Translations under genes and position numbers: made by a program
Shown here: piece by piece, positions 14,031 through 42,618 of the stretch
Layout of the letters: each line of letters opens with the position of its first letter
Position numbering within the stretch: the first letter of the stretch is position 1
The notes under the pieces: generated by a model
Seen by the model: only the letters and a program-made list of their open reading frames with translations
Told to the model about the DNA's origin: nothing
Databases searched by the model: none
From: Hemiscyllium ocellatum
Lineage: Eukaryota
Direction of reading: 5' to 3'
NCBI RefSeq assembly: GCF_020745735.1
Contig: NC_083419.1
Location: forward strand, 55,152,135-55,216,134
DNA: 64,000 bases

Positions 14031-14034
14031 GTCT

Positions 14035-14610: not shown

Positions 14611-14727
14611 ACTCTGCAAATGGAGACCCGGAGCTGTACTAGCCTGCAATGCAGTAGGGTGACTGTACAGAGCTCGGATCCTAATGTGCAATGGGGAGAC
14701 TGACCTATTCTAAACTGAAAGACTATT

Positions 14728-19330: not shown

Positions 19331-19550
19331 AAATTTCAAGGTGTTCAGTTCCTCCAAGGTACCCGAAAAAGACAGAAACTACAATTCATAGCAATCCAGC
19401 ATTTAAAATGCAGAAAAGGTGGCAAAACTTTATTAAGATTACAGGCAGTGGGACTTGTTCAGGAAATATCTATAAAGCAATAGGGATTTCAACTGTGTCA
19501 ACCAATGTTCTATAAAGTTGGAACAAGACTTCCTTGTTTTTGTATTTTAT

Positions 19551-19647
19551 CTGAAAATGTGTTGCTGGTTAAAGCACAGCAGGTCAGGCAGCATCCAAGG
19601 AACAGGAAATTCGACGTTTCGGGCCAGAGCCCTTCATCAGGAATGTA
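19551..19647 (-). mobile_element. Penelope-derived hammerhead element (single arm)
   Basis: TSD ttttgtattttat at 19538-19550 and 19648-19660; intact motif at 19609-19644. Confidence 0.85.
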
Positions 19648-20079
19648 TTTTGTATTTTATGCCTTGGCTAATGAGGACAAGTATCCTGTATGCCTTCTTC
19701 ATCACTGTCTACCTGTGCTGACACTTTCAGGGATCTATGGACTTGCATGCCAAGGTTTCTTTGTTCCTCTGCACTCCCCAGGGACCCACCACATTGTGAA
19801 AATCTTTCCTTATTAAGAGAGGAACACCTTCTAGCATCTGAGAGCAGGGGAGTGTGGGGAGAGCAAGTCCAACACAGAAAAGGTCAACCTTGTGAAGACT
19901 GTGAGCCCAGCACGGGTAAGCACTTAAAAAGGGCTACAATGATGAACGTTTAACTTTATTTCTTTACTTTTCTAATTTGTATCCAAAGTTTTGTACCTGG
20001 GTACCTTTGTACTGAAGATGGTACCAGGAATGGTGACGTGGTGCACTTTCACTGTGGTCCTGTATCCCTGTAGAGTCAG

Positions 20080-21870
20080 AGAGTCATAGAGATGTACAGC
20101 ATGGAAACAGTCCTTGCAGTTCAACTCATTCATTACGACCAGATATCCCAACCCAATCAGTCCCACTTGCCAGCACCCGGCACATACCCCCCCAAAACCC
20201 TTCCTTTTAATATACCCATCCAAATGTCTTTTAAATATTGTAATTGTACTAGCCTCTACCACTTCCACCACTTCCTCTAGCAGCTCATTCCATACACTTA
20301 TCACCGTCTGCATGAAAAAGTTGCCCCTTAGATCTCTTTTATATCTTTCCCCTCTCACCCTAAATCTATGTCCTCTAGTTCTGGACTCCCCCACCTGAGA
20401 GAAAAGACTTTGTCTATTTATCCTATTCATGCCCCTCATAATTTTGTAAACCTCTATAAGGTCACCCCTCAGCCTCCGACACTCCAGTGAAAACACCCCT
20501 AGCTTATTCAACCTCTCCCTGTAGCTCAAATCCTCCAACCCTGGTAACATCCTTGTAAATCTTTTCTGAACCCTTTCAAGTTTCACAACATCTTTCCGAT
20601 AGGAAGGAGACCAGAATTGCACGCAATATTCCAACAGTGGCCTAACCAATGTCCTGTAGAGCCGCAACATGATCTCCCAACTCCTGTACTCGATACTCTG
20701 ACCAATAAAGGAAAGCATGCCAAACACCTTCTTCACTATCCCATCTAGCTGTGACTCCATTTTCAAGGAGCTATGAACCTGCACTCCAAGGTCTCTTTGT
20801 TCAGCAACACTCCCTGGTTCCTTACCATTAAGTGTATAAGTCCTACAAAGATTTGCTTTCCCAAAATGCAGCACCTCGCATTTATCTAAATTAAACTCCA
20901 TCTGCCACTTCTCAGCCCATTGGCCCATCTGATCAAGATCCCATTGTAATCTGAGGTAGCCTTCTTCACTGTCCATTTCACCTCCAACCTTGGCGTCATC
21001 TGCAAACTTACTAACTATACCTCTTATGCTCCCATCCAAATCATTTATATAATGATTTATATAATTATATTATTATATACTCATTTATATAATGAGTGCC
21101 ACCGATCCTTGTGGCACTCCAATGGTCACAGGCTGCCAGCCTGAAAAATAAATCCCCACCACCACCCTCTGTCTTCTGCCTTTGAGCCAGTTCTGTATCC
21201 AAAAGTCTACATCTCCCTGTATTCCATGAAATCTCACCTTGCTAATCAGTACCCCACGGGGAACCTTGTCGCACGTCTTACTGAAGTCCATATAGATCAC
21301 ATCTACCGCTCTGCCCTCATCAATCCTCTTTGTTACTTCTTCAAAAGCTCAAGTTTGTGAGACATAATTTCCCATGCACAAAGCCATGTTGACTATCCCT
21401 AATCAGTCCTTGCCCTTCCAAATATATGTACATCCTGTCCCTCAGGATTCCCTCCAACAACCTGCCCACCACCAACGTCAGACTCACTGGTCTATAGTTC
21501 CCTTACCACCTTTCTTAGACAGTGGCACCAACCTCCAGTTTTCCGGCACCTCACCTATGACTATCGATGATACAGTTATGTTAGTAAGAGGCCCAGCAAT
21601 GACTTCCTTAGCTTCCCAGAGTTCTAGGGTACACCTGATTAGGTCCTGGGGATTTATCCACTTTTATGAGTTTCAAGACATCCAGCACTTCCTCCTCTGT
21701 AATATGGGCATTTTTCAAGATGTCACCATCTATTTTGCCACTTTGTATCTTCCATTTCTACAGTAAATACCGATGCAAAATACTCGTTTAGTATCTCCCC
21801 CATTTTCTGCAGCTCCACACAAAGGCAGCCTTGGTAGTCTTTGAGGGGCCCCGTTCTTTCCCCAGTTAAC
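20080..21870 (-). mobile_element. CR1 (HER1-like) LINE, 3' ~1.8 kb with RT
   Basis: 355-aa ORF SKFADDAKVGG..LEYCVQFWSP; GVPQGS upstream. Confidence 0.95.
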
Positions 21871-21899
21871 CTTTTGTCCTTTGTACGTGACAATAAAAT

Positions 21900-22745
21900 C
21901 TAATTTGAATTCCATTCTAATTTATTAGACCTCCAAAGATGCATCACCTCAACCTTATCAGGATTAAATTCTATCTGTTGTTGCTGTGCCCAATTTATCA
22001 GTGGATCAATATCTGACTGTAGCTTGAGACCATCCTCCTCACTATCAAAACCTATTTAATTATACTTTTTACATTCACATCCAAGCCATTAATGTACATA
22101 ACAAACAAGGGTCCCAACATTGATCCTTGGGGTACATCTCTGGTCACAGGCTTCCAATCACAGAAACAACCCTCCACCATTACCCTTTGTCTCCTATTTG
22201 TAAGCCAGTTCTGAATCCAGTTGTCTTGAAGCCCATGTGCTCTTACCTTTTGGACCAGCCTTCCATGTGGAACCTTGTGAAAGGCTTTATTATAGTCCAT
22301 GTAAAGCACATCAACTGCACTACCCTTACCAATATATTTTGTCACCTTCTCATAAAACCTTATAAAATTAATTAGACAAGATCTCCCTCCAACAAATCTG
22401 TGCTGACTATCCCTGAATGATTCCTGCCTTTCCAAGTATAGATTAAACATATCCCTCAGAAATGTTTGCAATTATTTTCCTACCACTCTCTGAGACTAAC
22501 TGGTCTGTAATTACTTGGCTTTCCTTGCTGTCCTTCTTGAACAACGTAACCCACATTAGCTACCCTGCAGTCATCTGGTGCTTTACATAGGGCCAATGAA
22601 GTATTAAAAATCCCCGCCAAGGCACCAGCAATCTCCTCCCTTGCCTCCAATAGCAGCCTGGGATACATCTCATCAGGCCCTTGGGATTTCTGCACCTTCA
22701 CGGCTGCTAAAGCATATAATACCTCCTACTTATTAATCTTAACAT
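21900..22745 (-). mobile_element. Second CR1 RT fragment, host of the younger copy
   Basis: KSQGPDEMYPRLL, NYRPVSL, KAFHKVPHGRL, VPQGSMLGP. Confidence 0.9.
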
Positions 22746-23279
22746 ACCCTAGAACCATCCCAACCAAGACCAACCCTATAAGTAGAAACAGATTGTCTTT
22801 GAACAGGGTGCCACTGATAAGCTCTGTGAATAGGATAAGTGGACTGATCAATACAGGAAAGTTAAAACTAATTCAGAATTTAACTATTTAAGCAAACATA
22901 ATATTGTTGTGTGGAGAGTGACCACTTGAATGGAATAGTTGTGTCAAATGGCCCATTTCATAGAATCCCCACAGTGTGGAAACAGGCCATTTGGCCCAAC
23001 AAGTCATTTATAATCCTACAGAATCAAGTGTGCATTAGATTAACCTTTCAAGGGCACTTTGTTTTTCAACAATTGCTCATCGATTCACTTGTATATTTTT
23101 CACCAAGTAGAATAAATTTACCCAACGTTTCTGGGAAGGGGAGCAATAAGTTCGTGAGGTTGTAGCACAGTTTCCATTCCCACCTGAAGTCAGGTGACGT
23201 GCTGCAGCAACAGGAACTGTCAGAGTTACGGCCAGTGACTGCAGGAGGTTAATGTTGTTGCCAAAGGAAAGACTTGGAG

Positions 23280-23585
23280 CAATTCATTCACAGACATGGG
23301 TGTTACTAGCTGGCCCAACATTTATTGCCCAGACGGCAGTTCAGACACAACCACATTGCCATGGACTTGATGTACCATTTCGACCAGATTTCCTTCCCTA
23401 AACGACATTAGTGAACTGATGTTATTTGACAACAATTGACAGTGGTTAAATGGCTGTCATTGGCTAGCTGTTTATTCCAGACTTTTTATTGAACATAAAG
23501 TTCCCCATCTGTCGCACCGGGATTTGAACATTAGACTGGGACTTCAGAATTACTAATCCAGTAACATTACTATGATGTCATGACT
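23280..23585 (-). mobile_element. Second SINE family (tRNA-like head, LINE-type tail)
   Basis: Similar to 53125-53482; duplicated at about 36855-37160. Confidence 0.6.
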
Positions 23586-24144
23586 ACCCACAATATCCCC
23601 TTCTTGCTAAAGGACCCCCCAGCAAATGATGTTGATGAGCTGTAGAGAGGGACAGATTTCTGGATGAATGAAGTTGGAAGGTGATCTGTCAAACTCCACT
23701 GATGAGACATTTGGTAATGTGCAAATGTTGGATTTCAGCTGGTCTATTTCTTTACCTGCTGGCATCAAGAAAAGTGAAATACGGTACATTGTCTATCTCT
23801 GAAAGAAAAACAGAAAATACTGTGAATAGTCAGTAGGTCAGACTGTGTTGTGGAGAGAGAAAAACAGAGTTGAGGTTCCAGATCGCTGATCTTTCACCAG
23901 AACCTCTTCCCATGTGCATTAGAGCCATTGGCTGCCAGCATTACCCTGTGTCAGGACTAAACATCGGTTTCTGTTATCCTCTTTCCCCAACAGTGAAAGC
24001 GAGAGATTATTCTGAAGAAACTAGGAATGAACAATAAATGATCAGGTGAATAAAAAAATCATAGGATATTTCCAGCCTAATGGCCACTAAAGGGTTACTG
24101 AATCTCCGAATAGTAATCTATTCTTTATGTTACAATGTCTCATC

Positions 24145-24321
24145 GGGGCAGCATGGTGGCTCAGTGGTTAGCACTGCAACCTCACAGCGCCAGTGACCCT
24201 GGTTCAATTCCCAACTTGGGCGACAGTCTTTCTGGAGTTTGCATATTCTCCCTGTGTCTGTGCAGGTTTCTTCCCACAATCCAAAAGATGTGCACGTTAG
24301 GTGAATTGGCCATGCTAAATT
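24145..24321 (+). mobile_element. HE1 SINE 5' half, fused to a CR1 3' end (24322-24480)
   Basis: SINE stops at gctaaatt and continues tgcaacgtttagtaggcattt (CR1). Confidence 0.85.
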
Positions 24322-25139
24322 TGCAACGTTTAGTAGGCATTTAGATAAGTACATGAATAAGAAGTTTTTTAAGAGGTATGGACCAGCTGCAGGAAGCTGG
24401 GACTTCTTTAGTTTGAGATTATGGTCAGCATGGACTGATTGAACCAAAGGGTCTATTGTTGTGCTGTACAAATCAATGCCTCTACTTCATTGAAATGCAA
24501 GGTGGTATGAAGCTAGAGATCATTTGTGCCAAGTTATTTTAGGATAAAACTGTCACTAAACTGAAACTCCTTTCCCTTACATTAAAACATTTCTCTGCTG
24601 AATCTGAAATTGAGTTTTGTGGGAAGGACCTCAATGGAATTTTCTTGGTTTTTAGGTTAGTGTAAAAAAAGTGGCCTAAGGACCTTTAGTTTCGTCCAAA
24701 CTCTATCCACCCAAAGCAAAGTAAAGTTTGCTACCAAGTCTACTGGCATAGGGCATCAGGCAACAGACATGTAATGAATTTGGTAGAACAGGACAATGTG
24801 TTATATAGCTGAAGTATTCCAGTGTTTTGAAATCTAATTAAAGTTTTGATGGTGTTGAGTAGGAATATGTACACTTGACCCAGAAAGGTTGTTCGACATT
24901 CATCACTTTGTATAAGCTTGGTGTACATTCAGAAATTTCAGAGATTAGAAGGGTGAAGAGGGGGCAGGGAAATGGCCCAAAGAAACAATCTGTATAAATC
25001 TGTACAATTTTCACATTTTTTTATTACATGCATGAACACCATGTTGATAAGGTCTGTTATGTACCAGGCCAGACACCCCCTCAAAGCAATTCAAGAAAGT
25101 AGCCCAGTCTCTACCTTTGCTAGTTGTTTTAAGCAGGTG

Positions 25140-25959
25140 TGTGGGGAAGAAAATAAACCACTCTGCATGCCCACTACTTGTTCACAAAAACCATGTCTGC
25201 TCTTAGCTAAACAGAATCTACCCATAATACTTCAACTTGACCACAACCAGCTCAGGAACTAAACAGCAAAACAAGACATTACCTAAACAGTTCCCAGACT
25301 GAAGGAATACACTTCTTAGACGGTCTGACAACAGACTTCCTGCCTCACAATAGCATCACTGCTCCTGCAGCCCCAAGGACATCCTCAGTCTCCTCAGGTA
25401 CTGAAGCCCCAGGAAGCCTACCCAGGCTGAGTGCCACCCAGATACCTGATAGGAATGCACACCACCCTGCAGACCGATTGAAACCAGGATACTGGACAAT
25501 AGTGTCGATGGTTTGATCAAGAGCCCTTCGAAACGTCGACTCTCCTGCTCCTCAGATGCTGCCTGACCTGCTGTGCTTTCCCAGCATCACACTCTCAACT
25601 CTAATCTCCAGAATCTGCAGTCCTCACTTCGCCTATTAGACATTAGCACCTGCTCTAGCAGAGGAATGGAACCACCAGTTACAATTATTACCAGATTGCT
25701 ACTACTGGACAACTGATTGTTTTGCATTGAATGTAATTTAATTTATATTGTCCTGTAATTAACACTACACTACTGTAACACACTGTAACTCTGAAAAGAC
25801 TGCCTGTATCTGCAGCTCAGGGAAACTGTGCAGAGTGTCTGTTCTGTACTAGTCCTGTCAAATTCTCTTTCCCACGATATTGTGAGAAATAAACCAGTAT
25901 TCATCAGTTTCACAAGATCTGTGTGTGGCCTCCATTTGTAATTGAACGATTCTCCGACA
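25140..25959 (+). mobile_element. Solo LTR (inner)
   Basis: TGTGGGGAA..TTCTCCGACA terminal inverted repeat, 5-bp TSD aggtg, AATAAA at about 25888. Confidence 0.8.
25529..25636 (+). mobile_element. Penelope-derived tail inside the inner LTR
   Basis: cgaaacgtcgactctcctgctcctcagatgctgcctgacc. Confidence 0.8.
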
Positions 25960-27571
25960 AGGTGTAACACAGATATTCCGGGAGGGATGCAGCTGCTCAA
26001 ACCACTTAGTTTTAAACAAAACAGAATTTATTTACAAGGTTACTGAAAGAAACATGAACAAAAGAGAACAGAATACCGAATAACTTATCTGAAAACCCAA
26101 AAGATTATCCCAATTTACCGATGCTGTTCCAAATATTTGCGACAATCCCCATAAACACCCCTTGTGTAAAATCAAGCACAGGGTCTTACAGGAGAGATCT
26201 CAGAGGGAGAGAGAGAGAGTACCAGTCTGGACCTGCTTCTTTAGGTCCAGCAGCGTCTTCAGCTCTACTGTACGAAAACCAAACTAAACCAGAGAAAGGC
26301 TGTGCTGGGAGCACTGGCCGCTCCCCTTTCATTATACAAGTGTTTTTATTTAAAACTTGAAAGCCTTTTTCACTGAGGCAGTATCTGTTAGCTATAGTCA
26401 AACTGGCCCTAAAACCCAGCCAAGCCCAGACTGTTAGGAGTCCTTCTCTTTTACGACCTCTCTGAAAAAGAAGCCAAGGACAACATAACCTTGTTAAAGG
26501 AGTAGCATCATTACAGGTCATCAGGGACTACCTGAGATCTTCCAGCAATCAGAACCTTACTGCCTGCACAATCTTGGTCAAAGATTGAGTACCAGTTTAT
26601 AGAAAATAATGCGTGAGATCAGTTTGAAGATATCGTCATTTGAGAGTAGCTGCTAACCATTTGAAACAGTTAACAAATGTGTTTGCGTTTATCACCAAAT
26701 GTTCAGGATTTTGTTCTATAAAACCAAATTGTGACATGTGCATGGTTTGGGATCTGTTTCAGAGTATTTTGTTAACATATATGATGTTTCAACTCCACTT
26801 CCTGTTTGGTATACAGTGGTATTTGACACATATATATGACAATTGTGTTAATTGTTCAAGATTAATTATTGTGGGTTTCCTACTAATTGTCAACTACTAT
26901 TGATTCAGTCTGATGTATTGATGCAGTCTTGAGCAATAGAATCATTCTATAAGCATTATATCAGAATTTAAATACAATCAACATGTCATACTCTCTAGAA
27001 TGACTCAAAATTACGAGCTGTTTAATCTCAGTTTATACTGTCTCCTATAGTTCTGAATGTAACATAAAGTTATTTTGTGCACATCTAATGTAACTCTGAG
27101 AAACAGCCTACCATCTCAGAATCTCCTTCCTCCTGCAAACTGTAATCTGAGAAAGATGTTAACTCCTAGCCTTAGTAGTTTGTGCTTTACCACTGGGGAT
27201 AAATGTCCCCTCATTGGAGTTGAAGTTACCTTAAAGGACAAAGTTCTAAAAAGGGCTATCTCCTTAACAGTAACATTTCTTACCATTATCAAACTATTGC
27301 AGGCACACCAGCCCTCAATTTCCCATATATTCCGTTTATCAAGCTTTTAATATGAGACAGTGAGCATGCAAGTAGAGTGAGCAATTATGAAAGGAAATAG
27401 CACTTTGGACTTTGACGCAAGGGGACTGAGGTACAAGCGTAAGCATTTGTACAACCATAAAGGGCTTTGGTGGGACTACAACTGAAACACTGTGCAAAGT
27501 TTTGATTTTAAAATCAACTTAAGAGTATACTTGCATTGGACGTGATGCAGCAACAATTCCTTGAATGGCCT

Positions 27572-27915
27572 GGGGTGGCACAGTGGCTCAGTGGCTAGTA
27601 CTGCTGCCTCACCAGTGCCAGAGACCCAGGTTCGATTCCAGCCTTGGGCGACTCTCTGAGTAGACTTTGCATATTCTCCCTGTGTCTGTGTGGGTTTCCT
27701 CTGGGCGCTCCGGTTTCCTCCCACAGTCCAAAGATGTGCAGGTTAGGTGAATTGGCCATGCTAAATTGCCCATAGTGTTCGGGGATGGGTGGATTAGTCA
27801 GGGGTAAATGTAGAGAAAGATAGTAGGGGATGGGTCTTGGGTGGTTTACTGTTGGGAGGGTCAGTGTAGACTTGTTGGGCCAAATGGCTTGTTTCCATAC
27901 TGTTGTGATGCTATG
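27572..27915 (+). mobile_element. HE1 / V-SINE inserted in an old CR1 fragment (about 27370-28180)
   Basis: Full head, V-domain and tail. Confidence 0.9.
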
Positions 27916-28209
27916 AAACGGTTGTCCTGAGTAAACTGAGCCTATACATTCTGACTTTCAGAGGAACGAAAAGTAACCTCCTTGATAAATAATAGATTCT
28001 GAATGGAGTTGACAAGTTAGACATTGAGGTTGTGTCACTGGCTGAGAAATGTCAAGTATGGGGATCAATCTGAGAATAATGGGTTAACCACTTAAGAGCT
28101 GAGATGAGGTGAAAATTCTTTAGTCACTCAGTTATGAATCTTTACCTGAGAGGGCTATGGGTTTTCTTAAAAATTATCTAGTGAATATTGGCGTGCCTGA
28201 TTGGCTAAC

Positions 28210-29150
28210 TTTTATTGCGTATCACAAGAAGGTGGTGGTGAGCTGCTTCCTTGAACCCCTGCAGTCCACAAGCTGGAGGTAGATCCACAACGCCCTGAGG
28301 GAGGTACTATAGGATTTTGACCCAGTGACAGTGAATGAATGGTGATACATTTCCAAGTCAGGATGATGAGTGGCATGGAGGGGAACTTGCAGGTCATAGT
28401 GTTCCTATGTATCTGCTGCCCTTGTCCTTAGAGATGGAAGTGATAATTAGTTTCAAAGGTACTGAATAAGGATGTATGGTGAAATGCTGCAGTGCATCTT
28501 GTAGGTAGTGTATACTGCTGCTACAAAATAGAAAATGGAAACGTGTGGGTGTGGTGCCAATCAAGCGGGCAGCTTTGTCCTGGATGGTGTCAAGCTTCTT
28601 GACTATTGTTGGAGCTGCACCCACCAGGCAAGTGGAGCATGGTTCCACCTTGGGCCTTGTAGATAATGGACAGGCTTTGGGGAATTATTCTTAGCCCCTG
28701 GCCTGCTCTTGTAGCCACTGTGTTTATGTGGTGAGTTCAGTTGAGTTTCTGGTCAATGGTAATGCCCAGGATGTTGATAGTGGGGGATTCAGTGATGGTA
28801 ACACTGTCAAAGGAATGTTAAGAGACAGGGGTTAGATGTTGTCTTACTGGAAATGGTCATTGCCTGACCTTTATGTGGCACAGATGTTACTTGCCACTTG
28901 TCAGCACAAGCCTCGATATTATCCAGATCTTGTTGTGTTTGAACATGGACTGCTTCAGTATATGACGAGTCGCAAATGGTGTTGAACACTGTGCAATGAT
29001 CTGTGAACATCCCTTATGCCAGGTATGACTCTCACCAGCAGAGAGCTTGCCCTGTGAAACTCCTTGATTCCAGTTTTGCTAGGGGTCCTTGACGCTACAC
29101 TCAGTTGAATGCTGTTTTGATGTCAAGGGCTGTCACTCCTCATTGACCTT
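28210..29150 (-). mobile_element. CR1/L2-group LINE 3' portion
   Basis: MFTDHCTVF (~FADD), KLDTIQDKAARLIG; related copy at 55735-56460. Confidence 0.75.
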
Positions 29151-30089
29151 GAGTCACCTTTTGAACTTCTGCAGTCTACATGGTCAAGATACTTCCACAG
29201 TACTATTGGGGAGGCAGTTCCACCTGTGGCTGTGATAGGGACCAGCTATCTATTCTAAGTCAGGATGGTGAGTAATTTGAGGAAAGTGCATTTTGTGGTG
29301 TTCCCAATACCTGCTACACTTGCTCGGTAAATGGGGGTTTGGAAGGTATTAGTGAAGAAAGCTGCAAGGCTGCTGCATTGAACAAGATCACAACATTGAC
29401 CCGAAATCAAACATTAGACCTATTCCAGAAATCATCTCCAAGAATCATATAACTGTGTGGTTATTGGGTTCAACAGCCGAGTACAGTAGGACAGATTTAT
29501 GTTTACACAAGCTTAATGTCAGAGCCTGTTATATTCTGATTTTCATTTACTTGTGTAAATACAATGGATGTAGGGAACTAGTTGAAGCAAATGAATATGA
29601 AACAGGCATATATATTCCACTGCTCAGTTTGAACTTCGCACTTCCAAAATCCAAATGCTGGAGCGAAAACATAATTCTGGTTTGAAAATTGCTGATTTAA
29701 ACTGTGATCGCTGCTCTCAATTGTCAGCATGGGTAAGTCACAATTTAAATACTGCCTGAAGGAGCTACGTCATGCACATACGCAGACAAATGCAACATTA
29801 CAGTTAGAGATGGGAGCACTATCCATACAACTGTGATTTAAGTTAATGAAGTTGTCAGACCATGATTTAAACTATACAACTCAAAACAATCTTAATCTTA
29901 CTGGGAGATTCTTGTACTCAATAATTCTCCAGATATTATTGCGTTTTGAACATGGACTGCTTCGAAGCTAACTAAAAGCTGCTCAAAAATGTATTGCAAA
30001 ACATGGGAAATATTTAAATGTAAATAGTGAAATATATTACAACCTTTTGATGATCCTGTTTTCAATAATGTCCCAAACTGCAATGGTGT

Positions 30090-30470
30090 TCAGGACCTGA
30101 TTTTACTGTAAGTAGCTTGGCCTGTGGATATCGGTGTTATGTGACTTACCAACAGGAAAGTAATACAGAGAATAATTTGGGAGCGTCCAGCCTGCAGAAT
30201 ATATGAATGGCATTAACACAGATTCAAGCGCCATGTGAAAATTACACAGAATGATTGATGTTACCAGAAAAAGACAGCCTAATTGGATTCAGGACATGCT
30301 AAGAGAAAATGGGATATTAAAAAAGATGATAAAAGACTGGATGAAAGGAAAAATGAGGGGTTCGGAAATCAAAGATGCTTTTGGACAGCTGAATAATGGG
30401 AGAGCAGATGGAATATTGAAGAGAGCAGCAGAAGAGGGTAACTTAGACAGGGGAAATTTGAGGCGGGGCC
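30090..30470 (+). mobile_element. RTE-clade LINE C-terminal remnant
   Basis: RKRQPNWIQDMLRENGILKKMIKDWMKGKMRG..LKRAAEE resembles the RTE ORF end. Confidence 0.55.
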
Positions 30471-30576
30471 TAATGTTAGCCTTAGAGTTAGTGGTGATGA
30501 CAGTGCAGTGCCCTGGTAGTATTTGTATCAGTGTACTGTACTTTGGATCAGAATAACTATCTCATACTCTCCTTAT

Positions 30577-30708
30577 TGGTGAATTGGCCATGCTAAATTT
30601 CCCATAGTGTTGGGTGCATTAGTCAGAGGGAAATTTGGAAGGGCGGTGTGAACTGGTTGGGGCCGAAGGGCCTATTTCCACACTGTAGGGAATCTAATCT
30701 AATCTAAT
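30577..30708 (+). mobile_element. HE1 SINE 3' fragment
   Basis: ggtgaattggccatgctaaatt..(aatct)n. Confidence 0.85.
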
Positions 30709-30830
30709 CTTATGGAAGTTCCTAGCGTAGAGACACAGAGATGCACACTGTGGAAACAGACCCTTTGTTCCAGCTCATCCATGCTGACCAGATATCCTGA
30801 ACTAATCTTGCCAGCATTTGGCCCATATCC

Positions 30831-31063
30831 GGGTAAAAAATGAGGTCTGCAGATGCTGGAGATCACAGTTGAAAATGTGTTGCTGGTTAAAGCACAGCAG
30901 GTTAGGTAGCATCCAAGGAATAGGAAATTCAACGTTTCGGGCATAAGCCCTTCATCAGGAATCCTATCATTCCTGATGAAGGGCTTATGCCCGAAACGTC
31001 GAATTTCCTATTCCTTGGATGCTACCTAACATGCTGTGCTTTAACCAGCAACACATTTTCAAC
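30831..31063. mobile_element. Young palindromic Penelope-derived element with two opposed hammerheads
   Basis: ~100-bp arms nearly perfectly inverted; TSD tttgRcccatWtcc at 30817-30830 and 31064-31077. Confidence 0.9.
30969..31004 (+). ncRNA. Minimal type I hammerhead ribozyme
   Basis: ATTC-CTGATGA-a-GGGC(ttat)GCCC-GAAAC-GTC-GAAT; predicted cleavage after 31000. Confidence 0.8.
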
Positions 31064-32329
31064 TTTGACCCATTTCCCTCCAGACCCTTCCTATTCATAT
31101 ACCCATCCAGAGGCTTTTTAAATGTTGTCATTCTACCAGCCTCACCATTTCCTCTGGCAGCTCATTCCTTACACGCACCACCCACTGTGAGAAAAAGTTG
31201 TCCCTCAGGTCCCCTTTAAATCTTACTCCTCTCAGCTTCAACCTATGCCCTCTAATTTTGGACTCCTCCACCCTGGGAAAAAGACCTTGGCCTTTCATCC
31301 TATCCCTGTCCCTTATGATTTTATAAATTTCTGTGTAAGTTCAGCCTCCGATGCTCCAGGGAAAATAGCCCCAGTTTATTCAGCCTCTCTCTATAATTCA
31401 AGCCCTCCAACTCTGGCAACAACCCCATAAATCTTTTCTGAACCCTTTCAAGCTTAATAACATCTTTTCTATAATAGGGACACTAGAACTGATTGCAGTA
31501 TTCCAAAAGTGGCTTAATCAACATCCTGTACTGCTGCAACATGACCATCAGGCAGCTGCAGATTGGCCTGATGGTGGGGGCAGAAAACCCGACCTTTTGT
31601 TAAAATACGTTATCTGAGAGCCTTATTGGTTTGCATCTGCCAGCATGGCTCCTGCTGGTCTCATTGCAGAAAGGAGGGGGAATTCACCTTGTAATTGTAC
31701 TGTCAAAAGAACAGAGTTAAACTGAAAGGACAGAGATGAGAATTTTTTAAAGAAGTACAATTACCACAGACTTTTCTCTTAAGAGTGCCTTATTTCTAAA
31801 AAAAGGTTCCATCCTCCTTTGAGCTATTACACAAAATGAAACAAGAATCACAGATAATGAAGCTTGTTATCTTGTTCTCTGAACCTAACCATGTTGATTA
31901 CGTGTTATAGCTTATTATTCACACCACCGTATCTAATATTACAAAGACTATTTGGTGATCAGTAAATGTTAGAAGCAAGATAATGATAAGTACAACAGGA
32001 TTCCAGTTAAATGATAAGCTGATTCATGCGCTGAGTTCAGGTAATGTGTCACTTTCCAGATTATTTCAACTCAGTCATATATTGATGAGATAAAAAAAAC
32101 TTAATGTTTAGTTTTGTCATATTTGTAAGGCAAAAATGGAGGCAATCTGCTGGTTAACCATCAATTCCGCAAACTTTTCGTTGGTTAGAAAGTATTATGT
32201 CGCTACTTGCGAAAGTCAACACTGTTACTTGGTGCTAGTACCATCTTAAACTAGTGAATATGAGAAGAGTTGCACTAAGTTCCACATTCCAACCCCCAAC
32301 TCCAGAAAAGCATGCAGAACTTACCCCAG

Positions 32330-34620
32330 CAAATGAGAGGTTCGATGTCATGGAGGATCTCCAGGGCATGAAGAGCCAATGAGCCTCACTCTTTCCCTCG
32401 GAGGCCTCCAAGATAATCTTCTGGTCTGGGGTCTGCTCCATGGAGCAAGATGAGATGTGCACGTGTTCCTTCTTCTAGAAGGTGTAGATGGCTCGGTAAT
32501 GTCACCTCAGTCTGACATCCTGAGGACCAGCAAATCCTTTGATGTCAGTCTGGATGACACACAGCCCACAGACAGTGCGGCCTCCCAGTTGTTCCTGTCC
32601 TCTATTATGGAGATCTTATACAATAGCATACAGGAGCTGCTGAACCAGCCGCTATTTGTGGATGAACTGACCAGGGTCTTCGAGTCCGTAGAAAAGAATA
32701 AAACCCCAGGAACAGATGGCTTACTGGCTGAGTTGTGTTCGGCTCTATGGGGCTGGATTGGCAGGACCTGCTGGAGGTGTACGACAGTATGCTTCTGGCA
32801 GGGAGCATGTGAGAATCCATGAGGAAAGGTTGCATCATCCTCATCTACAGGCGGAAGGGGGCAAGGGAGGAATTTAGAAATTGGTGACCAATCTCACTGT
32901 TAAATGTGGATTACTGAATCCTGTCTGAGATCATTACCAGCCAGGTCAGGAGAGCTCTGGGATTGGTGATCCATTCCGACCAAACCTGTGCTGTACTGGG
33001 CAGGACGATCTCTGAGAGTCTCACGCTCCTCAGGGATACGATCGCCTACATGCAAGACAGCGGGCTGGATGCCTGCCTCATCAGCCTGGACCAGGAGAAG
33101 GCTTTTGACAGGATATCGCACACCTACATGTGGGACACACTCTCCAAAGTGGAGTTTGGGGAGGGAATCTGCAATTGGATCTGATTGCTCTACACCAACA
33201 TCATTAGTGCAATCACAATCAGTGGGTGGGAATCAGAAAGCTTCCCGATTAGATCCAGAGTCAGAGCTGAAAATGTGTTGCTGGTTAAAGCACAGCAGGT
33301 TAGGCAGCATCCAAGGAACAGGAAATTCGACGTTTCGGGCCAGAGCCCTTCATCAGGAATTAGATCCAGAGTCAGGCAGGGCTGTCCACTCTCTCTTGCC
33401 TGTGTGTGTGCGTTGTATAGAGCCTTTTGCTAAGTTCATCAGGAAGGATGTGGGCCTGAGAAGGAGTGGAGGTTTGAGGGTCAAAGCCCTGCAGGATGAC
33501 ATTGCTGTTTTCTGCTCGGATCCACTGTCACAGCCTCATGAACATCTGCAACCAATTTGAACTGGCTTCGGGAGCCAAGGTAAATCAAGGCAAGAGCAAG
33601 GCCATGTTCTTTGGCGATTGGGCCAACTGATCCTTTATCCTCTTCACCGTCAGGACAGATTACCTGAAGATGCTGGATATTTGGTGCGGAGAGGCAGGGT
33701 CATGCACAAAATCTTCGGAGGAGCACATCGCCAAAGTAAGGCAGCAACTGGGCTTATGGGAGACTGCTCTCTCTCCATTGCGGTAAAACCCTGGTCAACA
33801 GTGTTGCTGTATGTCGCGTACGTCTGGCCTGTTCCCTGGGCCAGCACCACTGCAGTCACCCAAGCCACCTTCCATCATCTGGAGATCTAAGATCGACTGA
33901 GTCCACAGGGATACCTAATACAAAGCTCTGGATAATTTGGAGAAGGGGGAGAGGGTGGACCTACCCTCATTCCGATGGCCATCTTTTTTGTGTGACTGCA
34001 TCAAGCTGTGCGCAGTTCCTTGATATGCAAACACCAAGTGTTAGTACAGACTGAGACTTTACCTGTCCCTGGTGTTATGAAGGATGAGTCTGGCTTTGTT
34101 ACTATGGAATTCAACTGAGTATTGCAGACTGGCATGTCCGAAGGTCCAGTTCTATATGCTGAAGGGTGCTTTAAAGCTTGGAGCAGCTGCTGCTAAGGTG
34201 CACTGGCGAAAGGCGACTGAGTAAGTGCCTTTCTGGCCATCCACCATGAGGCCTTCCCTTTGTAAAGAAGGTCCGGAGAGAGACGTAGTGGTTTTTGTTG
34301 AGGTTTGTCCTCAGCAGCTCCGTGGCAGGCCTCTGTGCTCTACAGTCTGTTCCCTGGGATATACACTCCGACAAACATCGATTGCGCCTGGAGGACCATC
34401 AACTAAGTAAAGGATGTTCTTTGGTCTGCCAAAACTGTTTGGCCTTCCACAGCAAGGACCTGACCTTGATGGAGTGTTGCAGACTAGCAGATTCCAAGGT
34501 CCACGACTACTGAGGGATGCACCAAAGTTTGGGGCAGCTTCCACCAGGGCACAGTGGCGAAAGACCACCATCTGACCGCCATCTTTAGTAACTGGCCATG
34601 AAGGCCTGTTAAATTCTAAG
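32330..34620 (+). mobile_element. Tx1/L1-clade non-LTR retrotransposon ORF2 remnant
   Basis: KTPGTDGLLAE, PISLLNVDY, VIHSDQTCAV..ISLDQEKAFDRISH, VRQGCPLS; many stops and frameshifts. Confidence 0.9.
33265..33358 (-). mobile_element. Penelope-derived hammerhead element inserted in the Tx1 RT
   Basis: 17-bp TSD attagatccagagtcag at 33248-33264 and 33359-33375; intact motif at 33325-33360. Confidence 0.9.
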
Positions 34621-34689
34621 ACACCGTCGTTGCCTGAATGGGAATGTTAATAGCTTTCTTTCATGATTAAATAATGTTAATTTTTTGTT

Positions 34690-35001
34690 ATTAGATTAGA
34701 TTACTTACAGTGTGGAAACAGGTCCTTCGGCCCAACAAGTCCACCCCAACCAGCCAAAGCGCAACCCACCCACACCTCTACATTTAACCCTTACCTAACA
34801 CTACAGGCAATTTAGCATGGCCAATTCACCTGACCCACACATCTTTGGACTTGGGAGGAAACCGGAGCACCCGGAGGAAACCCACGCAGACACGGGGAGA
34901 ACATGCAAACTCCACACAGTCAGTCGCCTGAGGCGGGAATTGAACCCGGGTCTCAGGAGCTGTGAGGCAGCAGTGCTAACCACTGTGCCACCTTGCCGCC
35001 C
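34690..35001 (-). mobile_element. HE1 / V-SINE (young)
   Basis: Full length, (TAATC)n tail. Confidence 0.92.
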
Positions 35002-35102
35002 ACCACTACGTCTCTCTCCGGACCTTCTTTACAAAGGAAAGGCCTCATGGTGGTTGGCCAGAAAGGCACTTACTCAGTTGCCTTTCGCCAGTGCACCTTA
35101 GC
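35002..35102 (-). repeat. 101-bp inverted copy of 34192-34292
   Basis: Reverse complement matches with 3 mismatches by eye. Confidence 0.9.
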
Positions 35103-35885
35103 GCCCACCGCTCCCTCCCCATTGATGCTGCTTGGCCTGCTGTGATCTCCAGCATTTTTTGTTTTCACTACAGTTTTCAGCATTTCCAGTAATTTCATCC
35201 TATTTCTTTTTTTCAATGTTCTGCTCCAGTATGTGTGAGCATTCCTCTAACCAACGCATCCTGCTATTGGATTATGCTCTCTCATTACTTCTCGGATCCT
35301 ACTTTACGGTCACCGTATTTTTCCCATATGTTACAAAAATACTGGGGCTATTCACGTTGCGAACTTTCCTCACTCAGCTTTCTCAGTATGTCATTTCGCA
35401 CCTTCCTCTTCTTCCCTCATCAAGCACATGGATTTACACCAACAAGACGTTCACTTGTTGCTACCTCTCTCAAACTCGTTATTGGCTCTGCAGGAATCCT
35501 GCCTGTGCCCTTCTGCTATTGTGTGCACTTAGCCCAGCCCTCACTTCATAATGAAGGTTAAAACTTCCATCTCCAATTCTTTTACTGACATGAAAAATGA
35601 ACAATTGGCTGACCAAAATTATGTAAGAAAATATTAGAAAGGAGATATTTTAAAGAACTGTGGGTCAAAGGTAAAGCCAGTTGATGTTGAAAGTTGATGA
35701 TCAGGCCTGGACTATGTCTATACCCTGACGTGAGGATCAAACTCATAAGCTTCTGATTCAGAGGTGAGGGCCACCAACTGATTCAGGTGGACACCTTAGA
35801 ATATTCACTTTGATCCTTGCTTGCTGTATTACCAAAGCCAAATACTCATGGTCAGATTGGATGATTCTCTTATCCTTCAGTAACA

Positions 35886-36293
35886 TTAGATCAGATTCCC
35901 TACAGTATGGAAACAGGCCCTTCGGCCCAACAAGTCTACATAGACCCTCTGAAGAGTAACCCACGCACTCATTCCTGATGAAGGGCTTGTGCCCGAAACA
36001 TCGAATTTCCTGTTCCTTGGATGCTGCCTGACCTGCTGCGCTTTTCCAGCACTGATCTCCAGCATCTGCAGACCTCACTTTTCCCTCTATATTTACCCCT
36101 GACTAACACAATGGGCAATTTAGCATGGCCAATTCACCTAACGTGCACATCTTTTAGATTGTGGGAAGAAACCTGCACAGACACAGGGAGAATATGCAAA
36201 CTCCAGAAAGACTGTCGCCCAAGGTGGGAATTGAACCAGGGTCACTGGCGCTGTGAGGTTGCAGTGCTAACCACTGAGCCACCATGCTGCCCC
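35886..36293 (-). mobile_element. HE1 SINE interrupted by a hammerhead element (about 35968-36082)
   Basis: Head at 36293, tail at 35886; attcctgatgaagggcttgtgcccgaaacatcgaat at 35971-36006. Confidence 0.85.
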
Positions 36294-38564
36294 GATGAGA
36301 CATTGTAACATAAATAATAGATTACTATTCGGAGATTCAGTAACCCTTTAGTGGCCATTAGGCTGGAAATATCCTATAATTTTTTTATTCACCTGATCAT
36401 TTATTGTTCATTCCTAGTTTCTTCAGAATAATCTCTCGCTTTCACTGTTGGGGAAAGAGGATAACAGAAACCGATGTTTAATCCTGACACAGGATAATGC
36501 TGGCAGCCAATGGCTCTAATGCACATGGGAAGAGGTTCTGGTGAAAGATCAGTGATCTGGAACCTCAACACTGTTTTTCTCTCTCCACAAACACAGTCTG
36601 ACCTACTGACTATTCACAGTATTTTCTGTTTTTCTTTCAGAGATAGACAATGTACCGTATTTCACTTTTCTTGATGCCAGCAGGTAAAGAAATAGACCAG
36701 CTGAAATCCAACATTTGCACATTACCAAATGTCTCATCAGTGGAGTTTGACAGATCACCTTCCAACTTCATTCATCCAGACGTCTGTCCCTCTCTACAGC
36801 TCATCAACATCATTTGCTGGGGGGTCCTTTAGCAAGAAGGGGATATTGTGGGTAGTCATGACATCATAGTAATGTTACTGGATTAGTAATTCTGAAGTCC
36901 CAGTCTAATGTTCAAATCCCGGTGCGACAGATGGGGAACTTTACGTTCAATAAAAAGTCTGGAATAAACAGCTAGCCAATGACAGCCATTTAACCACTGT
37001 CAATTGTTGTCAAATAACATCAGTTCACTAATGTCGTTTAGGGAAGGAAATCTGGTCGAAATGGTACATCAAGTCCATGGCAATGTGGTCGTGTCTGAAC
37101 TGCCGTCTGGGCAATAAATGTTGGGCCAGCTAGTAACACCCATGTCTGTGAATGAATTGCTCCAAGTCTTTCCTTTGGCAACAACACTAACCTCCTGCAG
37201 TCACTGGCCGTAACTCTGACAGTTCGTGTTGCTGCAGCACGTCACCTGACCTCAGGTGGGAATGGAAACTGTGCTACAACCTCACGAACTTATTGCTCCC
37301 CTTCCCAGAAACGTTGGGTAAATTTATTCTACTTGGAGAAAAATATACAAGTGAATTGATGAGCAATTGTTGAAAAACAAAGTGCCCTTGAAAGGTTAAT
37401 CTAATGCACACTTGATTCTGTAGGATTATAAATGACTTGTTGGGCCAAATGGCCTGTTTCCACACTGTGGAGATTCTATGAAATGAGCCATTTGACACAA
37501 CTATTCCATTCAAGTGGTCACTCTCCACACAACAATATTATGTTTGCTTAAATAGTTAAATTCTGAATTAATTTTAACTTTCCTATATTGATCAGTCCAC
37601 TTATCCTATTCACAGAGATTATCAGTGGCACTCTGTTCAAAGACAATCTGTTCCTACTTATAGGGTTGGTCTTGGTTGGGATGGTTTTAGGGTATGTTAA
37701 GATTAATAAGTAGGAGGTATTATATGCTTTAGCAGCCGTGAAGGTGCAGAAATCCCAAGGGCCTGATGAGATGTATCCCAGGCTGCTGTTGGAGGCAAGG
37801 GAGGAGATTGCTGGTGCCTTGGCGGGGATATTTAATACTTCATTGGCCCTACGTAAAGCACCAGATGACTGCAGGGTAGCTAATGTGGGTTACGTTGTTC
37901 AAGAAGGACAGCAAGGAAAGCCAAGTAATTACAGACCAGTTAGTCTCAGAGAGTGGTAGGAAAATAATTGCAAACATTTCTGAGGGATATGTTTAATCTA
38001 TACTTGGAAAGGCAGGAATCATTCAGGGATAGTCAGCGCAGATTTGTTGGAGGGAGATCTTGTCTAATTAATTTTATAAGGTTTTATGAGAAGGTGACAA
38101 AATATATTGGTAAGGGTAGTGCAGTTGATGTGCTTTACATGGACTACAATAAAGCCTTTCACAAGGTTCCACATGGAAGGCTGGTCCAAAAGGTAAGAGC
38201 ACATGGGCTTCAAGACAAATGGATTCAGAACTGGCTTACAAATAGGAGACAAAGGGTAATGGTGGAGGGTTGTTTCTGTGATTGGAAGCCTGTGACCAGC
38301 GATGTACCCCAAGGATCAATGTTGGGACCCTTGTTTGTTATGTACATTAATGGCTTGGATGTGAATGTAAAAAGTATAATTAAATAGATTTTGATAGTGA
38401 GGAGGATGGTCTCAAGCTACAGTCAGATATTGATCCACTGATAAATTGGGCACAGCAACAACAGATAGAATTTAATCCTGATAAGGTTGAGGTGATGCAT
38501 CTTTGGAGGTCTAATAAATTAGAATGGAATTCAAATTAGATTTTATTGTCACGTACAAAGGACA

Positions 38565-40311
38565 AAAGGTTAACTGGGGAAAGAATGGGGCCCCTCAAAG
38601 ACCATTAAGGCTGCCTTTGTGTGGAGCTGCAGAAAATGGGGGAGATACTAAACGAGTATTTTGCATCGGTATTTACTGTAGAAATGGAAGATACAAAGTA
38701 GCAAAATAGATGGTGACATCTTGAAAAATGCGCATATTACAGAGGAGGAAGTGCTGGATGTCTTGAAACTCATAAAAGTGGATAAATCCCCAGGACCCAA
38801 TCAGGTGTACCCTAGAACTCTGGGAAGCTAAGGAAGTCATTGCTGGGCCTCTTACTAACATAACTGTATCATCGATAGTCATAGGTGAGATGCCGGAAAA
38901 CTGGAGGTTGGTGCCACTGTCTAAGAAAGGTGGTAAGGGAACTATAGACCAGTGAGTCTGGCGTTGGTGGTGGGCAGGTTGTTGGAGGGAATCCTGAGGG
39001 ACAGGATGTACATATATTTGGAAAGGCAAAGACTGATTAGGGATAGTCAACATGGCTTTGTGCATGGGAAATTATGTCTCACAAACTTGAGCTTTTGAAG
39101 AAGTAACAAAGAGGATTGATGAGGACAGAGCGGTAGATGTGATCTATATGGACTTCGGTAAGGCATTCGACAAGGTTCCCCGTGGGGTACTGATTAGCAA
39201 GGTGAAATTTCACGGAATACAGGGAGATGTAGACTTTTGGATACAGAACTGGCTCAAAGGCAGAAGACAGAGGGTGGTGGTGGGGATTTATTTTTCAGGC
39301 TGGCAGCCTGTGACCAGTGGAGTGCCACAAGGATCGGTGCTGGGTCCACTACTTTTTATCATTTATATAAATGATTTGGATGGGAGCATAAGAGGTATAG
39401 TTAGTAAGTTTGCAGATGACACCAAGATTGGAGGTGAAATGGACAGTGAAGAAGGCTACCTCAGATTACAATGGGATCTTGATCAGATGGGCCAATGGGC
39501 TGAGAAGTGGCAGATGGAGTTTAATTTAGATAAATGCGAAGTGCTGCATTTTGGGAAAGCAAATCTTTGCAGGACTTATACACTTTATGGTAAGGAACTA
39601 GGGAGTGTTGCTGAACAAAGACACCTTGGAGTGTAGGTTCATAGCTCCTTGAAAATGGAGTCACAGCTAGATGGGATAGTGAAGAAGGCATTTGGCATGC
39701 TTTCCTTTATTGGTCAGAGTATTGAGTACAGGAGTTGGGAGATCATGTTGCGGCTGTAACAGGACATTGGTTAGGCCACTGTTGGAATATTGCGTGCAAT
39801 TCTGGTCTCCTTCCTATCGGAAAGATGTTGTGAAACTTGAAAGGGTTCAGAAAAGATTTACAAGGATGTTACCAGGGTTGGAGGATTTGAGCTACAGGGA
39901 GAGGTTGAATAAGCTAGGGTTGTTTTCACTCGAGTGTCGGAGGCTGAGGGGTGACCTTATAGAGGTTTACAAAATTATGAGGGGCATGGATAGGATAAAT
40001 AGACAAAGTCTTTTCTCTCGGGTGTGGGAGTCCAGAGCTAGAGGACATAGGTTTAGGGTGAGAGGGGAAAGATATAAAAGAGATCTAAGGGGCAACTTTT
40101 TCATGCAGACGGTGGTAAGTGTATGGAATGAGCTGCTAGAGGAAGTGGTGGAAGTGGTAGAGGCTAGTACAATTGCAACATTTATATTAAAAGGAAGGGT
40201 TTGGTGGGGGGTATGTGCCGGGTGCTGGCAAGTGGGACTGATTGGGTTGGGATATCTGGTCGTAATGAATGAGTTGAACTGCAAGGACTGTTTCCATGCT
40301 GTACATCTCTA
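38565..40311 (+). mobile_element. CR1 (HER1-like) LINE, duplicate of 20080-21870
   Basis: ORFs 39139-39636 and 39692-40399 with RT motifs. Confidence 0.95.
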
Positions 40312-40314
40312 TTT

Positions 40315-40633
40315 AGGGGGCGGCACGGTGGCACAGTGGTTAGCACTGCTGCCTCACAGCGCCGGAGACCTGGGTTCAATTCCTGACTCAGGCGACTGAC
40401 TGTGTGGAGTTTGCACGTTCTCCCCGTGTCTGCGTGGGTTTCCTCCGGGTGCTCCGGTTTCCTCCCACAGTCCAAAGATGTGCAGGTTAAGTGAACTGGC
40501 CAGGACAAATTGCTCGTAGTGTTAGGTAAAGGGGTAATGTAGGGGTATGGGTGGGTTGCGCTTCAGCGGGTCGGTGTGGACTTGTTGGGCCGAAGGGCCT
40601 GTTTCCACACTGTAAATCTAATCTAAAAAAAAA
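40315..40633 (+). mobile_element. HE1 / V-SINE (young), absent from the left arm
   Basis: Inserted in ctctat|gactct; empty site at about 20086. Confidence 0.95.
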
Positions 40634-41075
40634 TGACTCTATGACTCTACAGGGATACAGGACTACAGTGAAAGTGCACCACGTCACCATTCCTGGTACC
40701 ATCTTCAGTACAAAGGTACCCAGGTACAAAACTTTGGATACAAATTAGAAAAGTAAAGAAATAAAGTTAAACGTTCATCATTGTAGCCCTTTTTAAGTGC
40801 TTACCCGTGCTGGGCTCACAGTCTTCACAAGGTTGACCTTTTCTGTGTTGGACTTGCTCTCCCCACACTCCCCTGCTCTCAGATGCTAGAAGGTGTTCCT
40901 CTCTTAATAAGGAAAGATTTTCACAATGTGGTGGGTCCCTGGGGAGTGCAGAGGAACAAACAAACCTTGGCATACAAGTCCATAGATCCCTGAAAGTGTC
41001 AGCACAGATAGACAGTGATGAAGAAGGCATACAGGATACTTGTCCTCATTAGCCAAGGCATAAAATACAAAATAC

Positions 41076-41170
41076 ATTCCTGATGAAGGGCTTATGCCCG
41101 AAACGTCGAATTTCCTATTCCTTGGATGCTGCCTGACCTGCTGTGCTTTAACCAGCAACACATTTTCAAC
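41076..41170 (+). mobile_element. Penelope-derived hammerhead element at the duplication boundary
   Basis: Intact motif at 41076-41111. Confidence 0.85.
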
Positions 41171-42618
41171 AATGAATCTACCACCCTCACTCTCATAATA
41201 GCTGAGTAACACTTCCTTTGGTCAACACAAATACTGTATCAGACCAGGATTCTCTCCATAAGGTCCAAGTACCTCACCTGCATCTCTGAGCTGAACACCA
41301 TTACTGATTTCCAGGATGTGTTTTCTTGTTTTGTTTGTCTGTATTAAATAGGCATTTGATGTTTATATCTGGTTCTTTCAATATCCAAGGGTTGACAAAT
41401 GCAATAACTATTCAAGCCAACTGCAGCATCACTTGATATGGAGAGCTATACGAGGTGATGGCTCTGAAAGGTTTAATGTTGAAGTTACAGTACCTCGACC
41501 CAACCTGTTGATGTTATACAGTCTGGGGTGGTAACCTGGAATTCTCCTCTTTCTTTTGGGAAGGAGCAGATGAATCTGTACTCGTTCCTTAATATCCTGT
41601 AACTACAGCTGACCAAATATAATTGTACTATCATGTAAGAAACTCTCTTGTTATCAAAAAACAGGGCCTTCCGTGGATACTTCATGTTGGTATTTTCTCT
41701 GCCATTAATCATTAGCTAGACCCCAGGCATAGCAAAAGTGAAGGAGGATTAGTGGCAGCAAATGGCCTCAAACAACTCTCACCTGGTGCCACATAATGTC
41801 ATAGGTGGTAAACACCACGGGATACCATGAGTAGTCATCTGGGAAAATACTACTTAGAGACTCCTAGTAAGGAGCTCTGACTGTGTTTTGAGCTGAATTA
41901 AGTGTGGACAGCTCATAGAAAATAGTTTTCCTTCTCAGAACCCCATATTCCTTTATGATCTCCAAGATATGTCAAACCATTACAATCGGGAGAAAACGTT
42001 ACAAAAACTGTTTTCAGACAGTGGAATATTTCAGCCCAGTAAATGTTGAATAACAATTTTCTTCAAGCTTTCGAGACAAAATAAATGGTTATTCATTTGC
42101 TGTCACGTACCCTGAGGATGTTTCTTTCTCACATCTCCCACATACTCTCACACGTGGAAAGATTACACACAGATGAAGCTATTATACCGTTACAGAATGT
42201 AATGATCACCATTTCTTCTGAGGCAAGCCTGAAGTTCCTTATTCAGAGATCTTATTTTACAGTTGAAGGGTTCTCAGCAGCCTTTGAGATTTCTTGTAGC
42301 TGTATTTTGAAACTCTCGATTCTCAGCTGAATTTAAAGTTGGAATGAGGTTTGAAGTCCTTTTCTCTGTTTGGTTCTTGATCTTTGAAAAGGTATTGGTT
42401 GCAATAATTTGGTTACAATGCTTGGATGACCTCCAGCCGGTTTGATAGCTTTCTGATGGAATTCTATCTGCAAAAGCACTTATAGTTGTTTTTTAACTGA
42501 TCAGCAATATACCTTCCTTATCATCTGATCCGTAGAAGTTCGAAGTGTTTTTTTTTCCTGTCTTATTCTTTAACATTTTGAGATACAACCTGTCTAGTTT
42601 GGATGAGGAAAACCATCA

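Follow-up and report, generated by a model that had tools for sequence, protein, structure and literature searches.

Junction anatomy of a 4.8 kb inverted segmental duplication, and of the spacer inversion it implies, in Hemiscyllium ocellatum

How does a genome come to carry two inverted copies of one segment around a spacer that, judging from its junctions, would itself have been turned round? The question is raised by a locus of Hemiscyllium ocellatum lying in a window of 64,000 nucleotides, which is the whole stretch of DNA analysed here (assembly GCF_020745735.1, contig NC_083419.1, positions 55,152,135 to 55,216,134 of the forward strand; all coordinates below count from the first letter of the window). 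An earlier note on this DNA had described an inverted duplication of 4.8 kb; in what follows the duplicated segment is called D, the spacer between its two copies X, and the left and right flanks A and C. The locus is a genuine inverted segmental duplication, apparently lineage-specific, non-coding and a mosaic of transposons. As to its origin, the junctions favour homology-primed replicative copying, to which we give a probability of roughly 0.6, and the homology would have been supplied by two oppositely oriented stubs of a small retroelement, e1 and e2.

Two native and two secondary ends

The inverted pair formed by 19552-24321 and 41168-36117 is the dominant one in the window, by repeat search and by self-BLAST alike, and these two methods together with alignment of the arms confirm the coordinates and the description that the earlier note had given. 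When the arms were aligned globally with 400 nt of flank on each side, 93 mismatches were found in 4,725 aligned columns (65 transitions and 28 transversions; 19 of the 93 in CpG context), a divergence of p = 1.97% (2.0% under the Kimura two-parameter model, K2P) and an identity of 98.0%. The arms are further separated by eight indels, the biggest of which is a 322-bp short interspersed element (SINE) present in the right arm only, and their longest identical tract measures 296 nt. Identity per 100 columns climbs from background to 96-100% exactly at 19552/41168 and falls back to background exactly past 24321/36117. Chance does not come near to explaining 98% identity over 4.7 kb. Runs of N are absent from the 64 kb, and D alone is present twice, the spacer and both flanks being single within the window. 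With kilobase length and an identity of at least 95%, the arms have the size and likeness of a pair prone to non-allelic homologous recombination (NAHR). The features on which the argument turns are collected in Table 1.

Table 1. Features of the inverted duplication, in window coordinates
Feature	Coordinates	Strand	Basis or remark
Outer copy of the 13-nt e1 target-site duplication TTTTGTATTTTAT	19538..19550	+	outside the arm
e1, Penelope-type stub with hammerhead motif, 94 nt	19552..19645	+	subfamily AACAGG/CCAGAG, 5'-truncated
Left arm D	19552..24321	+	repeat search, self-BLAST, alignment
SINE head, 3'-truncated	24141..24321	+	SINE-copy alignments
LINE tail, last ~170 nt of an unrelated old LINE	24322..24483	+	abuts the cut SINE
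Spacer X	24322..36116	no strand	11,795 bp, transposable-element-rich
Full SINE	35886..36293	-	unbroken over right inner boundary 36117
Nested long-form stub, 114 nt	35970..36083	-	only interruption of SINE 35886-36293
Right arm, inverted copy of D	36117..41168	-	5,052 nt owing to one extra SINE
tRNA-headed SINE, right arm only, 322 bp	40313..40634	+	in LINE-a terminal 8-mer repeats
Hybrid stub	41075..41194	-	family alignment; inferred switch interval 41075-41092

At the left outer end, the stub e1 lies within an old long interspersed element (LINE) and is followed, at 19648-19660, by the inner copy of its target duplication TTTTGTATTTTAT. After in silico excision of e1 and of one copy of this repeat, flank A runs into the beginning of the arm as one stretch colinear with the LINE at 20628-20815 (alignment score 59, against a maximum of 15 for shuffled sequence). 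The 13-nt target duplication and the colinearity over the reconstructed empty site show that this end is native and that e1 is a 5'-truncated insertion in an old LINE. The right inner end is native as well, because SINE alignments pass 36117 without a break: at least eight other SINE copies align straight through this position, and the element goes on to reach a LINE-like tail at about 35886.

The other two ends have a different character. All SINE alignments in the left arm end at 24321, where the truncated head abuts the tail of a LINE (score 45, against a shuffle maximum of 17); since a SINE without its 3' half cannot come from retrotransposition, this left inner join is secondary. The sequence shared at 24321|24322 amounts to 4-6 nt at most (AAATT), and neither strand of 41195-42600 has LINE similarity that would continue the tail at 24322-24483. 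At the right outer end, the inner copy of the target duplication and the 'TA' beside the stub tail are kept and the outer copy is missing; this join, too, is secondary.

The earlier note had likewise taken the left outer and right inner ends for native and the other two for derived, a division that held when each junction was checked. If the ancestor held a single D, these four junction states imply that X once stood reversed relative to today, so that an order A-D-X-C would have become A-D-inv(X)-inv(D)-C and the spacer would now lie opposite to the orientation implied for the single-copy ancestor. The earlier note had deduced the same order, and with one ancestral D the logic of the junctions indeed forces it; its further step, that inversion and duplication were one event, is not shown, since NAHR can flip a spacer too. 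A mirror-image history, with the right arm native on its outside and the left arm new, was also considered and rejected: it would make coincidences of both the TTTTGTATTTTAT duplication and the LINE colinearity over e1.

A probable hybrid stub at the right outer join

The stubs form a family of 20 copies within the window, which we take to be of Penelope type, a label that draws on PMC4209133. Every family copy aligned carries the hammerhead core boxes (CUGAUGA ... GAAA) on the antisense strand of the element, as in cctgatgaag ... cgaaac at 41080-41105; the curated hammerhead covariance models of Rfam gave no match in 40950-41300, even at E <= 10. In the alignment of the 20 copies, the long members start with GAAAGTGAGGACTGCAGATGCTGGAGATCAGAGT upstream of the core. 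Some stubs also stand as tail-to-tail inverted pairs, at 10871-11048, 11575-11760, 12090-12282 and 30870-31061.

The stub at the right outer end looks like a hybrid. Its tail, the adjoining TA and the target duplication are those of e1, and its core has letters of another subfamily (41093-41095 and 41117). Compared with the left stub, 4 of the 94 sites differ, three of them adjacent (CAG versus ATA in the loop, and C versus T elsewhere); the left states are shared with the copy at 33268 and the right ones with the copies at 30870 and 31061. Each set of states thus recurs elsewhere in the family, and point mutations that arose independently would hardly explain the pattern. In addition, similarity to the family extends beyond the end of the arm, to 41188-41201: the right stub has a 26-nt 5' extension (41169-41194), in register with the long members (GAGAGTGAGG-GTGGTAGATTCATTGT), whereas e1 has none and unrelated LINE sequence occupies the corresponding position at the left stub.

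Flank C probably already held a longer stub, e2, opposite in orientation to e1, and the copy of D would have been joined to it by pairing between the two. The left stub being unrecombined, the exchange would have been non-reciprocal, and non-reciprocal exchange is characteristic of copying (by template-switch or break-induced synthesis) and not of crossing-over. The earlier note had called this outer end novel: secondary it is, but probably not blunt, the 5' extension and the subfamily letters speaking for a homologous join inside a resident stub. A further stub, the one nested in the SINE of the right inner end, lies 34 nt inside the spacer from boundary 36117 and points the same way as the hybrid. 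Its closeness to the breakpoint may be chance (about 5%, given 20 stubs in 64 kb), or it may mark a stalling site.

The history that we favour starts from a single ancestral D, set beside flank A via e1 and its target duplication and passing through the SINE into X, the part of the account that is observed. A DNA end at or beside the resident e2, on the border of X and C, would then have paired with e1, which lay about 21 kb off in the opposite orientation. Of the 94 nt of homology between e1 and e2, the last ~18 nt (41075-41092) would have held the switch; synthesis would have copied D in reverse onto the C side, leaving the hybrid stub 41075-41194, and the other new join, 24321|24322, would have been sealed with little or no homology. 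The roughly 2% of divergence between the arms and the additional SINE of the right arm would be later changes.

Such copying could have taken two routes, and both fit the junction sequences equally well. By the first, a single replicative event would have copied D and X together, switching from D at 24321 to the far end of X on the other strand and then from e1 to e2; DNA between X and e2 could have been lost or kept. By the second, a break beside e2 would have allowed the C-side end to invade e1, copy the 4.8 kb of D and be sealed to the end of X, with X itself untouched; an odd number of NAHR flips would have followed, a crossover in the then-identical arms turning X round and giving the left arm the chimeric inner join, and both orientations may segregate. 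Taken by itself, this two-step route is possible but tentative, its weight being a share of the joint figure given above. Two events are required, yet 4.8 kb of synthesis suffices and no DNA need be lost, and the observed pattern results when a crossover within the arms takes the chimeric join from the inner end of the right arm to that of the left. The arms, identical at birth, are still 98% identical over 4.7 kb, with uninterrupted matches of up to 296 bp, and comparable inverted duplications in humans toggle recurrently (10.1101/2021.12.20.472354). Arms of this kind are expected to toggle, so the present orientation says little about the first product. With respect to the two mechanisms that the earlier note had offered, two template switches fit the junctions, and the in-register hybrid stub disfavours a staggered-break inversion.

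Public reads, age and the other histories

Several points count against replicative copying between e1 and e2, or against the arrangement on which it builds. Ectopic gene conversion of the right stub, coupled with a chance resemblance of its flank, is an alternative source of the hybrid. The match of the 5' extension is modestly significant, with p about 0.02: the end-anchored score of 41169-41194 against seven long members is 4.0, a value attained by 2% of random window segments, a null that has a mean of -1.6 and includes real stubs; the left flank is typical at -3.4. By eye, no e2 target duplication is seen between 41195+ and 24322+. The microhomology at 24321 was read from the alignment of the LINE family, which is not the ancestral sequence. 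As for public data, four runs were compared over 19200-25199 (X1 and X21, from different studies of the source species, here species A; X5 and X8, one run each of two sister species, B and C), and all consist of short Logan contigs that break in the SINE, LINE and stub repeats and whose depth is not a measure of copy number. None of the four junctions is bridged by contigs of these runs, and the arrangement rests on the assembly.

The same runs nevertheless speak for two copies of D in species A. Among the listed sites at which the arms differ, the non-reference letters in X1 and X21 are in 8 of 8 cases the right-arm letter, which means that both arm sequences exist in two independent samples. 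Contig depth, with the reservation just made, is 12.7-16 over the arms in X1 (flank 7.5, spacer 5.8) and 39.5-52.8 in X21 (flank 32.1, spacer 25); it is 14.4-16.7 in species B, one 141-nt contig standing at 23.5 (flank 15.2, spacer 13.4-19.3), and 8-11 in species C (flank/spacer 12.3). Relative to the flank, the arms in long contigs are thus at about 2x in X1, about 1.5x in X21 and about 1x in species B and C, and D looks like a two-copy segment in species A and a single-copy one in the other two.

Divergence points in the same direction. Over the same contigs, about 4% separates the left arm from species B and C, a figure to set beside the 2% by which the two arms differ overall (1.2% within 23390-24172); B and C also depart, at many sites, from a letter that the two arms share, and the outgroup letters place derived changes on both arms. 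The contig depths and this comparison of 2% with about 4% fit a lineage-specific duplication. It would be younger than the species split; with equal rates, and leaving gene conversion aside, it would have roughly half the age of that split. In species B, one contig also extends 92 nt past 19537, a place where those of species A break off within the high-copy stub, a hint that e1 may be absent from species B and its site empty. Some contig 'joints' in these runs (for example 19645->24151), with depths of tens to hundreds, were set aside as repeat adjacencies elsewhere and not at this locus; so was the joint 24321->19551 in X21 (depth about 124, from a SINE piece to the start of a stub), whose 17-nt linker is absent from the window and which presumably comes from another repeat-rich locus.

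A staggered-break inversion, isochromatid or chromatid, seems to us unlikely. Breaks 4.8 kb apart flanking D and another at X|C, followed by fill-in of the overhangs and homology-free joining, would yield in a single step exactly the layout A-D-inv(X)-inv(D)-C, and the 4-6 nt at most shared at the left inner join would suit such joining. Ranz et al. 2007 (PMC1885836) describe the same architecture in Drosophila, an inverted segment bracketed by inverted copies of formerly single-copy sequence, and in 12 of their 18 cases the duplication came, as here, from one breakpoint only. Their duplications, however, reach about 1.9 kb at most (median 321 bp), against 4.8 kb here, and the authors themselves regard the unwinding of long stretches as difficult. 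The right outer join, too, tells against end joining: joins of that kind should lie outside pre-existing repeats, and this one lies, on evidence of moderate strength, inside a pre-existing inverted repeat pair, in register in a stub with a 5' extension of its own and the letters of another subfamily, so that a blunt join would need to strike the homologous base by chance. The locus also differs from those of Ranz et al. in being non-coding, and in that its inversion is deduced from junction anatomy.

An artefact of assembly, whether a single D placed twice or a distant second copy misjoined, is very improbable. It would account for the want of a contig or read over the junctions and for a look-up of junction words over 24288-24355 that listed no run, although this look-up sampled 2 words only, in runs that hold ~70% of the words of a whole arm. 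The arms, on the other hand, differ at 93 sites and by 8 indels, a whole SINE among them, the right-arm letters recur in two independent samples, and the arms are raised in depth. Nor do the joins invite a mistake: the left inner one has no shared repeat at which an assembler could mis-overlap, and at the right outer one the overlap is only 94 nt. Least credible of all is a large composite mobile element that inserted twice independently, a history suggested by the start of both arms at the end of a small retroelement stub and ruled out by an arm that is a mosaic of unrelated old elements and low-copy DNA, that ends inside a SINE, that is colinear in its outer part with flank A within an old LINE, and whose depth outside known repeats is at single- to double-copy level. 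The probability that remains goes to histories not listed here.

Composition, relatives and meaning

Each arm is a patchwork of unrelated old elements and low-copy DNA. Besides the old LINE fragment that lies next to e1, the left arm contains a younger LINE on the minus strand (LINE-a), whose 3' end at ~20070 consists of two 8-mer repeats, a second LINE (LINE-b) with a reverse-transcriptase fragment at 22048-22744, and about 1.1 kb of low-copy DNA at 23006-24140. The open reading frames (ORFs) of the arm LINEs match RVT_1 in Pfam (E = 2.7e-21 for the right-arm ORF, and 7.6e-11), and the nearest Atlas clusters are reverse-transcriptase clusters. The earlier note had named these elements CR1: a LINE bearing a reverse transcriptase of non-LTR type is what RVT_1 and the Atlas clusters establish. 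Only the 3'-terminal 8-mer repeat, ATGACTCT/CTGACTCT, recalls CR1. Just left of the arm, at 18706-19322, stands a further, diverged LINE reverse-transcriptase fragment that is 57-59% identical to 20761-21403 and is not colinear with the fragment interrupted by e1.

The SINE that is confined to the right arm postdates the duplication, and its empty site in the left arm is at 20085/20086. It has a LINE-like tail and no clear target duplication, and it shares 89% identity with the copy at 34682-35001, from which it follows that this SINE family was still active after the rearrangement. The spacer contains further LINE, SINE and stub copies; its ORFs gave no match in Pfam. One part of it, 32457-33900 (+), is richer in G+C (0.47-0.49), and the ORF at 32457-32822, which has no Pfam match, resembles by eye the N-terminal part of a LINE reverse transcriptase (...KTPGTDGLLAEL...). 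No gene was recognised across arms, spacer and the remaining window, nor any exon or regulatory element in arms or spacer, and at the gathering score Rfam returned no tRNA, hammerhead or other family in the window. Elsewhere in the window, self-BLAST shows tandem-like internal repeats at 14025-14616 and 15846-16169, with offsets of about 60-300 nt and about 35-70 nt.

Replicative copying between inverted repeats has relatives in human rearrangements. In the class known as DUP-TRP/INV-DUP (duplication - inverted triplication - duplication), one junction lies in inverted repeats and one shows microhomology, both in cis (PMC11293582, PMC4352052 and 10.1101/2023.10.02.560172); microhomology-mediated break-induced replication (MMBIR) is the corresponding model (PMC2621351). 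The likeness to the class is fourfold: (i), there are two junctions in cis, one within inverted repeats, here the hybrid stub 41075-41194 set against the intact e1 (a match of moderate strength, e2 being inferred); (ii), the other junction has little or no homology, here the 4-6 nt at most at 24321|24322; (iii), the exchange is non-reciprocal; (iv), the additional copy is inverted. By contrast, 94-nt stubs supply the homology here, in place of low-copy repeats of kilobase size; a triplicated segment and flanking direct duplications are absent, and the spacer is copy-neutral. It is, moreover, an evolutionary event, apparently present in both sampled individuals, and not a patient rearrangement. 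The locus works like this class, then, without being a member of it.

Two other systems share some of its features. The fold-back inverted duplications of Hermetz et al. 2014 (PMC3907307) also have a single-copy spacer between their arms and a short inverted homology priming near the break; theirs are large and terminal, with an adjacent deletion and a dicentric intermediate, whereas the present one is interstitial and small and has kept both flanks. The human recurrent inversions of 10.1101/2021.12.20.472354 resemble it in having kilobase inverted arms at about 98% identity around a short spacer. The arms here are shorter than most of those, and a second orientation has not turned up among contigs too short to show one.

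In itself the structure matters little, because no gene, exon or regulatory element is recognised in arms or spacer; it is probably a non-coding, ordinary and neutral scar of rearrangement. Its interest is that of a clean and datable case in which a vertebrate genome has built an inverted repeat pair around a flipped segment. Inverted duplications that bracket an inverted segment are a known kind, and the point added here is the use of a pair of 94-nt stubs as the homology: if our reading of the right outer join is true, two retroelement stubs of this size are enough to prime copying. The locus is also a candidate for a polymorphic micro-inversion that flips recurrently, and recurrent flipping of the spacer by NAHR, which the earlier note had envisaged, would be plausible. 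More speculatively, and we hold this to be rather improbable as a general rule, abundant Penelope-type stubs, often arranged as fold-backs, could act genome-wide as short inverted homologies that prime fold-back or template-switch copying and so seed inverted segmental duplications and small inversions, of which this locus would be one instance; the stub 34 nt from the other breakpoint might then mark a place where synthesis stalled. Should the same signature recur at other inverted duplications of this genome, structural instability in sharks would be tied to the expansion of their Penelope-type elements.

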